Made by a program: the position numbers and the translations under genes. The notes beneath the pieces were generated by a model. It did not search any database. It was given only the letters and a program-made list of their open reading frames with translations, and had not been told where the DNA came from. Below, piece by piece: positions 6,261 to 25,593 of a DNA stretch of 64,000 nt. The stretch is from Paragordius varius. Lineage: Eukaryota > Animalia > Nematomorpha. The DNA lies in NCBI GenBank assembly GCA_964247055.1, contig OZ176050.1, positions 14,074,001 through 14,138,000 of the forward strand, in the 5' to 3' direction. The stretch's first letter is position 1. Each line of letters opens with the position of its first letter.

Positions 6261-9200
6261 TTAATTAGCAAAAGATTCCGTCAAATGTTGAATAAGTTTA
6301 ATAATCCATGCTAAACCTGGTATAAAGCTAATGAAATAGCTTACAAGTGATAAATATTCACCTTCATCGATTGTGAATACCTATATAAATATAATCATTA
6401 AAATTGGAAACACAATAAAAATTTAAAATTTTATATTTTTAACCGTGATTATCTATAAAACCTCTATCCTTTAGCGTTACAAAAATAAGGAATAGACATG
6501 TGAAATGGTATCATACACTCAATTTTATCAAACTGTTTAATGATTATTAGTAAAAGATAACAAATTAATTTTTTTTCACAAGAAAATTAACATTTTAAAT
6601 TTTTGTATTTTCGTATTCATGTGATTTAAAACTTTATTTTAAAACAAAAAACATAAAACATCATCAAAAAAGAAAAAAAATCAAACCTTTCTTTGGTTTA
6701 AAGATCGTTGTAGGGCAGCTCTGGCCTGATTACGATTCGATAAAGCCGTAATGTTTTGTACATTAAGGAGATTGTTAACATTATAATTGATTGTTCCACT
6801 CACTTGCTTAGTGTTGGGTGTCATATTAAAATTTATTCTGCCGGGTGTTACAAACTGATATAATTATAAAAAACTTATGTTAAGATTAATTTTTAATATA
6901 TAATTTTAAACAGATACAACCACCCCTTTGTTCAATAAACAGCGTCTATAAACTAATTAGCTCTTACTGATTATAATAAACTTTTCAATTTTAAAAATTC
7001 TATTTTCAAGCTTTGATCGTTAAAATGAAGAAAATTATTTTATTCATATTTTGCGTTGATTATACCATTTAAATATCCAAATAACCCTTGAACATACAAA
7101 TTCACTATACCATTTACACTTCAAGAGTGTCCTTGAACAATTCAAGTTGGTCCTTGAACAATTCAAGTTGATCCTTGAACAATTCAAGTTGGTCCTTGAA
7201 TTCAAGTTGGTCCTTAAAATTTATAAATTTTGATTTAACCATAATTTTTGCATTTTTTTTTATTTAATTATTTATTAACCTAATTTTCTTTATTTATTAT
7301 ATATTTATTCATTTAAAAATAAATTTTTTTTATTGAAAAACCACTTTTTTTGTTTAAAACTATTTTTTTTCAATTGAACAAAATTATTGACTTTTAAATG
7401 TTTTTAATGAAAAAATTTAATTAATAACCCAGAAAACTTATATATTTTTTCATTTCGTGTTAAAATATAAATATTTAAATTTATTTTCAGAAATTAATAA
7501 AGATATACGGTTTTTAAAAGATTAAAAGTTGATATCGATTTAAAATTTATGCTAAATAATAGAAAATAGGTTAAAAACAATAAAATAGACGAATTATTTT
7601 CGATTTGATTGATAAAAGTTAAAAACAAAACAAAAAAGTTAAAGGACCAACTTGAACTGTTCAAGGACCAACTTGAATTGTTCAAGGAAACTTGAATTGT
7701 TCAAGGACACTCTTGAAGTGTTAATGGTATATTAAACATTTACAAAATAACCCTAAAAAATTATATGTTTTTGAAGATCAAAAAATATTTAGAAAATTCT
7801 TTTAAAAATATAATTTTGTATAAATCTAACATAACATACAAAAAATATTAGGCCAAATAAAACTATATCATATCAAGAAATAGTTAAAGAGCCCCCAAAA
7901 CACATCATTCATTTTCAAGGTTATCGTAATGTCTGAGGGTAAATATGAAATGTTCAAGGGTGACGTAAATGGTTTAACCTGCAGACAATTCAAGAAGATC
8001 TAACGAACCATATAATTGGATGCAGACTTAGCTCATAAAAGTACGTTATGGAGAAAACAATTACAAGAGACTACGCGTTCCTTTTGGGATAACCTCTTGA
8101 ATAAACTTTTGTCTTTTAACTATTAAGATTTTTATGTTTTATTAATTAAAAAAATATACAGTTTAGAGTCTCTTTTTTCCTTTTTATTAAAGGGTAAGAA
8201 CTTAAATTGTATCCGGACACATGTGAAGGCTTTAACACTCGCCTGCCCAGGGCTGACAGTGATGATGGATAAAATGCGTAGTTCCGGGGTTCGAACTCTG
8301 GCATATAAATTATTATTAAGTTTTATATTTTATAACGGCCAACAAAGTTTTATTGGCACCTCTCCGTGGTGTTGACTGGGGCATGAAAATGCGCTAATAG
8401 CGGAGGCCAGTTTCTAACAATCTGTAAAATCATTAGTTTTACACAAGGAGCATGTATTAAGTAAAAAAATCGCCTCAATTTACCCACGAAGGATAAAATA
8501 CTATGAATATGAAATATTTCGTGGTACGAAAACTCCAAATCCGGAGTCCTACCCTTTATGATAATGATATTGATGATTAAGTAAAAACTCGAACCTTTTC
8601 TTCGTTAACATTGGTGATAGAGGATGGTTTTATAGGCATAACTCCAATCATTACAGTTAAACAATTTTGTGAAATATCGTTTGATTCAATTAATCTGCCA
8701 TTTTGTCTCAAAGCTTGACAAGCCTCTAATTTGCTCGCGTAACGTAAATCAATCCAGTTTCCACACTCTGAAGCAAACTAATATACATAATATATATATA
8801 TGTATATATGCACACAATTCACATTATAATTGCCGATTGTCAACAAGTAACGTACAGTAAAATTTAAAATTATACGGATAAATCGTAAAAATATAAAGAT
8901 AACCATACTTTTAATACCATAATTTATCCTATAACAATCATTTAATTACAATTGTAAAATAAACAAATAATTTGTTACCAATATACATCTCTATTTTATA
9001 TTTTACAGTTTTAAACAATGAGTTTTATTTTATAAAATCAAGATATTAAAAGTATGGTTGTTGTAGTTTAAAAAAAATATTTGTCTTTATATTTTTACGT
9101 TTTGTCCGTATAATTTCAATTTTTACTGCAAATGGGTATAAAAACAACAAAAATGTCGAAAAACAATTTTATCCTTTAATTTATATAATGATGGAGACAA

Positions 9201-21654: not shown

Positions 21655-21796
21655 CAAAAAACATTTATCATTTTACATAATATATCGCTAGTTTACCTTT
21701 TATAGAGCCTAATAAATCGATAAAATGGTAAAAAACCAAATTTAATATATTATAAAGCAAGGTATCCAACACAAATGATTTCACGGGCCGCATTTG

Positions 21797-21798
<2 letters not shown>

Positions 21799-21834
<36 letters not shown>
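21799..21834. repeat. (TA)n microsatellite at the LINE 3' junction
   Basis: About 18 TA units seen directly. Confidence 0.95.
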
Positions 21835-21836
<2 letters not shown>

Positions 21837-24800
21837 ATGGATAATTTTAGGACTCTATATTCGGAGTTTTGTGTCCGCGAAGTAATTTCCTCCATAAATT
21901 ACGATCTTTACATTGTTCTGTGGAAAGGCTACGTTGATTCAAGTCCATTTTTATATTATTATTATAAGAAAAAAGTGGTCGTCCCTTTCTTCTATTGCCC
22001 TCAACATTAATGTTTTCAACAGTTTTTAACGGATGGGTGGCGTCCCTTCTCTGAGTATGACCGTAGAGACGCAATCTGTTAGTTTGAATTATATAATCGA
22101 TTTTATCGGTTTTTTTGATGAAAATTGGTATTTCTGGTGTACGAAAGCAGCTTTTGAGTATTCGGTTCTCACTGGTTAGGAGTTTTGTTTGATTTGTTTA
22201 ATGCCCAGGTTTCAGAACCATAGGTAAGAGCAGGTCTTATTCCTGCCTTGTAAAAATACCATTTATTACGATTGTTAACATTTTTGTTTTGGAAAACATA
22301 TTTTCACTGATTATATTTTATCCAACCTTGTTGTATTCTTCTTTTGATAGCCTTTTGTAGGCTTCCCTGAGATGATATGACATCTCCTAGGTATACAAAA
22401 GAGTCTACCTATTCGATGTCATGTCCATCAATGTTAAGTAGCTTTGGTCGATTAAAATTATTATTGCTTGGGTCTAAGCAATTTAAACATTTAAAATATA
22501 TTATATTTGTTAACTTGTCTTTTACTTTAGAGCACTTTTTGTGTACCCACATTTGACATGATATGCATTTAATGGAATTTGAACGTACTTCCTTACTGCA
22601 AATGGAACAGGGGTATCTGGGTGTTTCACTTTCACCCGTTATCATTATTTTTGTTTTTGTGGCGTTTATAATCATTCCATATTATTCAAGGCATTTCTTC
22701 CACTTGGTATATGTATTTACCAGTTGATCCCATGATCGTGTCGTTATCACGAGGTCGTCGGCGAATAACATTTCCCAAGGGCATTCAGTTCTTATGTCTT
22801 TGCCGATATTGGTTCTAACGTTGGTTGTTGTATTTTTATAGAGTAGTAATAAGATTTGTATAGTATGTTCTTCTATTCCCTTTTTACGTAGTGCCCATTG
22901 AATTGTGGAGCGTGGTATTTGGTCAAACGCACGTTCCAGATCTACAAAGACATGGTATAGCTTTTGGTTCTTTTCCAGATATTTTTCTTGTAAGCGTCTT
23001 AGGATAAACAATGGATCTATTGTGCTACTGTTTGGACGGAATGCAAACTGATTCGAATCTATGTTTAAATGTTTTTTCAGCCTGTTTTCTAATATATTTT
23101 CGAATATTTTCAGTGTGTGTTCCAGAAGTTTTAAAGGTCGGTAGGACGATGTTTTTAGTCGATCGCCTTTATTTTTATAAATGGGGATTATTATGCTGTT
23201 CTTCCAATCGCTGGGGGTTTGGTTTGTAATTATTATTTGGTTAAAGAGTTTTGTCAGATACTCTGCAGTGTTTTTGATGGGTCGAATGTGGTCGACTGAA
23301 AGGCTGCTTGGGCCTGGAGCTTTGTTACTTTTTAATTTATTGATTGCAGTTGTGACTTCATCTATGGTGATTTCTTGTATGGGACCAGCTACTGGTGAAA
23401 CCGTGCTAAATTGTTTGGTCGAGTTTACTTGGTTGAGTTGTTTTTCTAAGTTCGTTTTCCAAATTTCCTTTACTTTCGAGGGATTCGTTATTATATTATC
23501 ATTATCATCTTTAATACATTCTATGGTTTTAACATCTTTATTACTATTGTTAAGGTTTTTGAGTCTTTTAAAAATCGTTTTGTTTTTAAAGTCTTTTTCT
23601 AAACTTTCAGCGATTTTAACGGATTTTTCATTCATAGCGTGTCTAATGTTTTGGACCTCTCGTTTTTTATCATCATTATTTTTGGTACTTTTCCATTTTT
23701 TATATGCTCCGCCCTTTTCACGCCACAATGGTTTTATTTCATTTTTCCACCACCAGCTTTTCCGTTGCCTCATTGGTTTAGTAAAGCCACAATGTTTTTT
23801 AGCGGATGTTAGAATTGTGCTTTTAAAATTTTCCATAGAGTTTCAACATTGTTTTGTTCGGGTATATGTAACTCTGTGTTTTTGGTATATTCGGTTAATA
23901 ATTTTGAATCCTTTAACTTTGCTATATTTATTTTTTGAGGTTGGAATGCGGTCTTACGGATTTTCTCAATGATTAGAAATGTTGTTATTAGCTTGTGTTG
24001 GTAAGAGGATTGATAGAAAGTTTTGATGTTTGTGAGAGGTTTCCTAATGTTTTTTGGAATTAATATGAAGTCTATCATAGATGAGTGGTCACCGGAATTA
24101 TATGTTATATGCTGGTTGGTTTTTTTCTTAAAATGGGTATTTGCGACTATGAGTTGATTTGCAATGCAAAAGTCTAGCAAACTCTCGCCCATCTTATCGA
24201 GGGTTCCGACGCCATTTCCACCATGGACGCCATGGTATTCATTACTATCATTATTAAAATGGGAATTAAAATCACCAGCAACAAAAGTTTGTTCGCTAGA
24301 AGAAGTTTTGTTCATCAAATCATAGAGGGCTTCCCAATCGTTTTTTGATGTTTCGCTTAGACCAGATTGTAAGTTGAAACTATATTTATTACATTATCAT
24401 TCATCAATATTTTTATTTGAATCATTCTTGGATTATGTCTTATTACATCAATTATGTTATCACGATAGATGTTTTTTATGAAAATCGCAATACCACCTTG
24501 TCCCTTGTCATTTCCTTTATAGAATATTGTATAAGTGTCTAAGTTTTTCAATCCCTCTCCTTTCATTCTGGCCTCTTGGATGCAACATATATCTATATTG
24601 TTATGTAGAGTGTTTGTTACCATTAATATTTTGTTAACTAGGGTACCCACATTCCATAAGGCAAATTTCAGAACTGTTTTATTATTATTATTAACGGTAC
24701 TATTTATTTTCATAGTTATTTTGGTAATTTTTATTATTCAAAGTATATATCCAAAAATATAGGGTATAAAAGTGTAAATAGGAAATATTATCAAAATAAT

Positions 24801-25018
24801 TATTATAAGTTGAATTATTATTGTTATTTGAGATGATAAGGTTTTAATGTTCTTTCATACTCATATTATTATACTTCATGGTTTATTGAGGCAATTTTTT
24901 ACGTAATACATGCCCTTGTGTACAACTAATGATTTTACAGATCATTAGAAAACTGGCCTTTGCCGTTAGCGCATTTTCATGCCCCAGCCAACACCACGAG
25001 GAGGTGGCAATAGGACTT

Positions 25019-25019
<1 letters not shown>
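21835..25019 (-). mobile_element. Near full-length RTE-clade non-LTR retrotransposon (APE endonuclease + RT), inactivated
   Basis: APE motifs FALWNVGTL, IDICCIQE, FVAGDFNSH, IDFILI; RT motifs YRPLKLL, QFAFRP, FVDLERAFD, LFADDLV; PHD-like CxxC...HxxC finger; C-terminal LYGHTQRR...RKGRP. Several stops and frameshifts; (TA)n on both flanks. Confidence 0.92.
24957..25019 (-). ncRNA. HDV-like ribozyme at the LINE 5' end (P1 5' strand lost)
   Basis: Minus strand: AAAGT CCTATTGCC ACC TCCTCGT GGT GTTGGCT GGG GCAT GAAA ATGC GCTAA C GGCAAAGG. P2, P3, L3 (UCCUCG), P1.1, P4 and the catalytic-C J4/2 are all canonical. Confidence 0.8.

Positions 25020-25058
<39 letters not shown>
25019..25058. repeat. (TA)n microsatellite at the LINE 5' junction
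   Basis: About 20 TA units with one interruption. Confidence 0.95.
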
Positions 25059-25593
25059 TGGGAATTTATTACTTTATCAGATTTCAAACATAAAACTGTA
25101 AAAAGAAAACAGCAAACAATGTTTTCTTGTTTGCCAATTGGATAGACTTATTCATAAAAGATTTTTGGGAAATATCATTCTAATAAAATTTTGTGCCCAT
25201 AATTTCGTAAATATTGGATTTGCAAATTATTGGCGGGCCGGCCGGCCGAACATTATCCCTTGTAGGGCCGCATATTGGCCCAACATAAAGCGCTTATAAA
25301 AATTTATCAAAAGGTATAAAATAATAAAAAATTTTCACAAGTTGAAACATAAAAGTTACAGATGTGATTAACAGCTTTTGTAGTTATTAAATAAAAAGAC
25401 GCCAAATTAACCAATTCAATTTCTAAACTAAAAAATGTTAAGTTTGAAAAGGGGTAGGAAAGCGCATCAAAATATAGTAAACCACTAACATAATATATAT
25501 ATATATATGAAAAATCAGTGGGTATAGAAAATTTATTTATTAACAAAAAGGTATTGTCAAAAACACCAAAATATAAAACTATAATGTAATGTT

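Follow-up and report, generated by a model that had tools for sequence, protein, structure and literature searches.

A truncated LINE with a ribozyme-like head

The window, by which we mean the whole 64,000-nucleotide stretch of DNA that was analysed, contains on its minus strand a 3187-bp copy of an RTE-like LINE, which was delimited by blastn comparison with the full-length element L062 and is 92-96% identical to it. This copy is truncated by 7-8 nt at the 5′ end and has an internal deletion of ~90 bp, and its ORF is broken into pieces of 118, 169, 384 and 88 aa that carry Exo_endo_phos, RVT_1 and PHD domains. Its 5′ end was found to hold a full set of HDV-like ribozyme parts, lacking only the P1 5′ strand, and the element is flanked on both sides by (TA)n. 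Among the neighbouring ORFs of the window, no clear host-gene context for co-transcription was found. The main features of the locus are as follows:

21799..21834: (TA)n microsatellite flanking the element at its 3′ end, representing the second half of the target or a target-site duplication
21833..21840, minus strand: 3′ terminus of the LINE, CCATCCAT, a short tandem repeat ~8 nt past the TAA stop, common to L061, L062 and L063
21833..25019, minus strand: whole RTE-like LINE copy
24957..25019, minus strand: HDV-like ribozyme without the P1 5′ strand, running from J1/2 to the P2 3′ strand, a predicted inactive relic (direct reading; 31.3 bits with RF01787; 84 bits with model R1)
25019..25059: (TA)n microsatellite, (TA)20, on the element's 5′ side, at the place of the missing P1 strand (Tandem Repeats Finder)

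When the minus strand was read from 25019 to 24957, the ribozyme parts named in the initial annotation were all found, in the order in which it had given them (by direct reading unless another basis is stated; the 49 aligned copies are described below):

25019-25015, minus strand: J1/2, AAAGU
25014-25006, minus strand: P2 5′ strand, CCUAUUGCC
25005-25003, minus strand: P3 5′ strand, ACC
25002-24996, minus strand: L3, UCCUCGU
24995-24993, minus strand: P3 3′ strand, GGU
24992-24986, minus strand: P1 3′ strand, GUUGGCU, partnerless in the window copy (GGCCAAC occupies positions 1-7 in intact copies; P1 pair counts)
24985-24983, minus strand: J1/4, GGG (P1.1)
24984..24985, minus strand: P1.1 guanines, pairing with the L3 cytosines at 25000-25001 (alignment columns 42-43, G in 49/49 copies)
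24982-24971, minus strand: P4, GCAU-GAAA-AUGC
24970-24965, minus strand: J4/2, GCUAAC
24969, minus strand: J4/2 cytosine (alignment column 79, C in 49/49 copies)
24964-24957, minus strand: P2 3′ strand, GGCAAAGG

P2 of the window copy consists of 8 bp with one bulged A. The J4/2 cytosine at 24969 (minus strand) corresponds to C75, the catalytic cytosine of HDV. The L3 sequence of the window copy is UCCUCGU, as had been annotated, and that of HDV is UCCUCGC; most copies of the family have UCCCCGU, and the position that is U in the window copy was found to be C in 36, A in 7, T in 4 and G in 2 of the 49 copies.

Genome-wide occurrence of the ribozyme

At Rfam gathering thresholds, no match was found in the whole window. 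In E-value mode, the window copy matched RF01787 (drz-agam-1) over the whole model with 31.3 bits (E 1.5e-4 in a 351-nt search), which does not reach the gathering cut-off of 37 bits for this model. The genome-wide scan with HDV-like descriptors that the initial annotation had proposed was carried out on the 110.5-Mb, 44-contig assembly. With RF01787, it gave 53 matches at E<=1, of which 19 were above the gathering score, the best at 50.6 bits. The intact copies of family A, to which the window copy belongs, scored 38.9-41.2 bits and those of other families 44.7-50.6 bits, and these copies are therefore members of the Rfam family.

A covariance model, R1, was built in this analysis from 14 copies. 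It gave at least 144 matches in the genome among the 150 candidates scored; because only these 150 were scored, 144 is a lower bound. The score of the window copy with R1 was 84 bits (E 5e-16, whole window, filters off), and a second copy in the window, at 8337-8406 on the plus strand, was also picked with 68.4 bits. In addition, the first 173 nt of the element were found at 40 or more scored places (196 candidates) at 86-98% identity in a genome search, and the 58-nt core had a single occurrence in the window and was absent from all 100 shuffles. These comparisons confirmed, as far as sequence allows, that positions 24957-25019 hold a real but disabled copy of an HDV-type ribozyme heading an RTE-like LINE.

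Ribozyme families, covariation and conservation

It was found that the ribozyme copies sort into at least three families:

Family A (that of the window copy): 70 nt; P1 GGCCAAC / GUUGGCU; P2 CCU-A-UUGCC / GGCAA-AGG; P4 of 4 bp
Family B: 77 nt; P1 GGACAUC / GAUGUCC; P2 CCU-A-CCUCC / GGAGG-AGG; P4 of 7 bp
Family C: 71 nt; P1 GGCCAAC / GUUGGUC; P2 CCU-A-CUGCU / AGCAG-AGG; P4 of 5 bp

The P1 5′ strand that had been predicted from the window copy, GGCCAAC, is present in intact copies directly before AAAGUCC, and in family A it can pair with GUUGGCU along its whole length, G1 forming a wobble with U. The description of the ribozyme as compact, with a 4-bp P4, likewise holds for family A as a whole.

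An alignment of the three families with MAFFT misaligned the 3′ half of family B, and a model-based alignment was used instead. Pairs were counted in 49 copies aligned to R1, with both pseudoknots entered in the structure line. Standard pairs were present in 90.5% of the cells, compared to 31-48% when the 3′ partners were slid by 1-3 columns. P2, which crosses P1, was paired in 92.7% of the cells and showed compensatory double changes at 5 of its 8 pairs; such changes were also found at 2 of the 7 pairs of P1 (C-G to A-U and A-U to U-A) and at 2 of the 4 pairs of P4, the length of which varies from 4 bp with a GAAA loop in family A to 5 bp in family C and 7 bp in family B. The values for P3 and P1.1 were 98.5% and 100% paired, respectively, and because these pairs barely vary, they provide evidence of conservation and not of covariation. 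All 49 copies agreed at the J4/2 cytosine (column 79), which sits within C-(U/C/G)-A-A, at both guanines of J1/4 and at the U that opens L3. A lack of conservation or covariation in other genomic copies would, according to the initial annotation, have spoken against the ribozyme; instead, P1 and P2 covary, and P3 and the J4/2 cytosine are conserved. The covariation represents few independent events, because only three or four lineages contributed the double changes, and the shuffle control is inflated by the young age and relatedness of the family A copies.

At least 6 of the 7 P1 pairs can form in 29 of the 49 copies. The remaining 20 have fewer, mostly due to loss of the first bases and in a few cases due to decay by point changes. 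Pseudoknot-free folding gave z-scores of -0.09 to -1.88, none of them significant, which is expected for a pseudoknot yet provides no support either. In such folds, an intact copy forms P1, P3 and P4, and the truncated window copy forms P2, P3 and P4, which are the two nested halves of the pseudoknot.

The identity of the ribozyme between distinct families was 64-70%, and 83% between family A and its close variant L066. In contrast, the next 150 nt of the 5′ UTR were 51-60% identical between family pairs, relative to a shuffled background of 50-53%. The higher identity of the ribozyme than of the adjoining 5′ UTR points to selection on the predicted ribozyme across LINE lineages.

The host LINE

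Full-length elements are 3313-3343 bp in family A and 3408 bp in family B. The best ORFs, of 901 aa (L062, family A) and 1032 aa (L064, family B), encode an AP endonuclease (Exo_endo_phos), RVT_1 and a PHD-like finger, and the proteins of families A and B were 45% identical in the sole pair compared. The 3′ UTR extends ~15 nt after the stop; its terminal repeat is (CCAT)2 in family A and, in family B, (GGAT)n. RTE elements have been described as ~3.3 kb long, with a single AP and RT ORF, a very short simple-repeat 3′ UTR and short target-site duplications (PMC2887409). The elements found here are similarly ~3.3 kb long and have a single ORF with an N-terminal AP endonuclease and RT, without RNase H or a gag-like ORF1, as well as an extremely short simple-repeat 3′ UTR and target-site duplications of 10-12 bp. 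The RTE label given in the initial annotation is supported by this architecture (size, single ORF, 3′ UTR and target-site duplications), which is the basis for calling the element RTE-like.

A PHD-like or C1-like Cys-rich finger was observed immediately beyond the RT motifs (E 4e-4 to 3e-5 with Pfam PHD), at residues 647-690 of L062:667-3372, at residues 781-824 of L064:381-3479 and at 22409-22675 (minus strand) of the window, and the combination of RVT_1, Exo_endo_phos and PHD was also found in other protein atlas clusters. Antisense to the RT region of the window copy lies an ORF of 263 aa (23181-23972, plus strand) with no Pfam match, which is probably a chance ORF.

Directly after the ribozyme, a hairpin was observed in each of the three families, and less distinctly in L066, its sequence differing between families: CUAAUGAU-CUGUAAA-AUCAUUAG in A, CGAUUU-GAGA-AAAUCG in B and GGAUGUU-…-AACAUC in C. 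This hairpin lies at 24916-24948 (minus strand) in the window and at the matching place in L062, L064, L065 and L066, and it is followed, before the first ATG, by the conserved motif AAGGGCA…GUAAA…UUGCCUCAA. The first ATG (ACCAUGAAG), at ~24879 (minus strand) in the window and in L064:305-427, is also conserved and opens only a short ORF. The length of this ORF is 11-13 aa in family A and 37 aa in family C; in family B, it has 40 aa and runs into the beginning of the main ORF, which is in a different frame. This short ORF recalls the early stop or frameshift described for RTE elements (PMC2887409).

The 5′ boundary of the element

In four full-length elements belonging to two families, target-site duplications of 10-12 bp directly abut G1, the first nucleotide of P1, and the 3′ tail:

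L061, family A: TAATAATAAAAT, 12 bp
L062, family A: ATATAAAATAT, 11 bp
L063, family A: ACTCTTTATTT, 11 bp
L064, family B: GTAAGGTGTGT, 10-11 bp

Upstream of intact copies, the adjoining 40 nt are unrelated to one another, with a mean identity of 0.34 that equals the background. Therefore, target-site duplications that abut G1, together with unrelated flanks, indicate that the RNA that was reverse-transcribed began at G1. Because the first P1 nucleotide is where HDV-like ribozymes cleave (PMC4908430), the element's 5′ end coincides with the predicted cleavage site. This boundary is strong but not exclusive support for cleavage, because initiation of transcription at G1 would give the same end.

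Insertion and decay of the window copy

The initial annotation held that the P1 5′ strand is missing from the window copy and has been replaced by (TA)n. The strand is indeed missing; it was not replaced, since (TA)n flanks the element on both sides. The two tracts therefore indicate insertion into a TA microsatellite with loss of the first 7-8 nt of the element, and small 5′ truncations of 1-12 nt were found to be common among the sampled copies. At the position of the P1 5′ strand, the window copy has UAUAUAU, in which only 3 of 7 positions can pair. Due to the loss of its first 7-8 nt, the window copy would be unable to form P1 or to cleave at the canonical site, and judging from its sequence, it is a dead relic with no likely function.

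The two flanks of the (TA)n that holds the LINE have a motif in common, AUGCGGCCC, at 25235-25290 (minus strand) and 21775-21798 (minus strand) of the window, and the upstream flank also contains a GC-rich GGCCGGCCGGCCCGCC run amid AT-rich DNA. The microsatellite that holds the LINE may lie inside another repeat element.

Proposed mechanism and alternatives

We consider it highly likely that the locus is the decayed head of an RTE-like LINE in which the first 70 nt of the family encode an HDV-like self-cleaving ribozyme that works as follows, and the family of the window copy is predicted to be very probably catalytically active. From the sequence features we infer that the LINE, which has no demonstrated promoter of its own, would be transcribed by read-through from upstream DNA, and that the nascent RNA would fold into the nested double pseudoknot (P1, P1.1, P2, P3 and P4). 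The J4/2 cytosine and Mg2+ would then bring about scission immediately 5′ of G1, and the freed LINE RNA, with G1 as its first base, would later be copied into DNA at a nicked target. If the LINE RNA starts at G1 in this way, full-length insertions would be expected to begin exactly at G1. Any role of the ribozyme in translation would be additional to this.

It could be argued that the 70-nt head merely resembles the HDV fold and does not cleave, being instead some structured part of the 5′ UTR, such as a promoter within the element or a module for translation or protein binding, with G1 as the point of transcription initiation. The G1 boundary considered alone would fit such a start equally well, the lack of significance of the MFE z-scores is compatible with it, and the 5′ UTR has more conserved features after the ribozyme (the hairpin and the motif before the ATG). 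However, we regard this as unlikely, given that all the catalytic-core positions of the HDV family are present and invariant, that two crossing helices covary and that intact copies score above the cut-off set by Rfam for an HDV-like family with an experimental foundation.

Two other functions come to mind, namely cutting in trans by copies that lack P1, or a translation-initiation module made up of the ribozyme, the hairpin and the short upstream ORF; that one or the other exists is a conjecture to which we give little weight. By their makeup, the copies with damaged or missing P1 (20 of 49) correspond to the "enzyme half" of an HDV ribozyme that has been split in two, and if transcribed, for example in introns, they could bind and cut N-GGCCAAC RNAs in trans. 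If this were true, the targets would include the transcripts of their own LINE family.

It is also very improbable that the window copy is still active by drawing a surrogate P1 5′ strand from host DNA further upstream, which would make J1/2 very long. On the minus strand, four wobble-compatible heptamers, about 1 being expected by chance, were found at a distance of 224-393 nt upstream:

~25412, minus strand: GGTTAAT
~25280, minus strand: GGCCAAT
~25247, minus strand: GGCCGGC
~25243, minus strand: GGCCGGC

There is a precedent in that some R2 ribozymes take in upstream 28S sequence. Involvement of sequence from outside the element in the R2 fold has been documented (PMC3774820). Against this, J1/2 would exceed 220 nt, whereas fast cleavage has been tied to a short J1/2 or a structured insert (PMC4908430), the heptamers are located within an unrelated GC-rich stretch, and the ORF of the element is broken, so that there would be no selection for ribozyme activity in the window copy. 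Finally, chance resemblance in AT-rich DNA, which would suit the sub-threshold Rfam score of the window copy considered alone, is negligible in view of the R1 E value, the number of related copies and the absence of the core from the shuffled sequences.

Comparison with known ribozymes

HDV-like ribozymes at the 5′ ends of retrotransposons were reportedly described by Ruminski et al. in 2011, Eickbush and Eickbush in 2010 and Sanchez-Luque et al. in 2011. The precedent at R2 and RTE 5′ ends to which the initial annotation appealed is established, such ribozymes having been found at the 5′ ends of RTE, R2, R4, Baggins and L1Tc elements, where they are proposed to release elements that have no promoter from co-transcripts and possibly to aid the start of translation (PMC3774820, PMC6765202, PMC4908430). 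As in these retrotransposons, the predicted ribozyme described here is the first feature of the element, and the predicted cut is at its first base. The difference is that the LINE families found here are new and carry a PHD-like finger following the RT, and the ribozyme activity is predicted.

The helix order is the same as in drz-Agam-1 (RF01787) of Anopheles gambiae, and P3, L3 and the start of J1/2 are nearly identical to it (ACC-UCCnCGu-GGU and AAAgU-CCU), J4/2 being CUAAC. P2 has 9 continuous pairs in drz-Agam-1, whereas the P2 described here has 8 bp and a bulged A, which lowers the RF01787 score, and P4 is ~10 bp in the Rfam consensus compared to 4 bp with GAAA in family A. The host genome, of 110 Mb, is also a different one. 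In comparison to genomic HDV, the nested double pseudoknot, the 7-bp P1 (with a G1-U wobble in family A), the 3-bp P3, the 7-nt L3, the 2-bp P1.1 and the catalytic J4/2 cytosine are shared, whereas P2 has another sequence and P4 is far shorter here. HDV is a circular subviral RNA, whereas the host here is a retrotransposon.

The known link between HDV-like ribozymes and RTE-type LINEs is extended by these results with several well-populated ribozyme families, which comprise at least 144 copies. For a case built from sequence comparison, the support is unusually clean: the target-site duplications adjoin the predicted cut, and the crossing helices covary across LINEs with 45% identity in protein. 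The compact 70-nt form, with its 4-bp P4 and GAAA loop, is a convenient candidate for biochemistry, and in genome annotation the ribozyme could serve as a marker of true full-length LINE 5′ ends.

Other unusual copies

The second ribozyme copy in the window is part of a segment at 8337-8553 on the plus strand, in which GGCCAAC is intact and P2 has decayed (68.4 bits with R1). In this segment, the ribozyme is followed by ~125 nt of LINE 5′ UTR, to which the final ~40 nt of the LINE are directly joined (…AAAACTCCAAATCCGGAGTCC…). The segment therefore resembles a SINE-like derivative made of head and tail, with an internal deletion, and not a solo fragment. In L017 (G000:C2:12934742-12934811 region), a partial second ribozyme head lies just upstream of a full copy, with …AAAGTCCTATTGCCACCTCCC joined to GGCCAAT…, which suggests a tandem or template-switch joining of two LINE 5′ ends.
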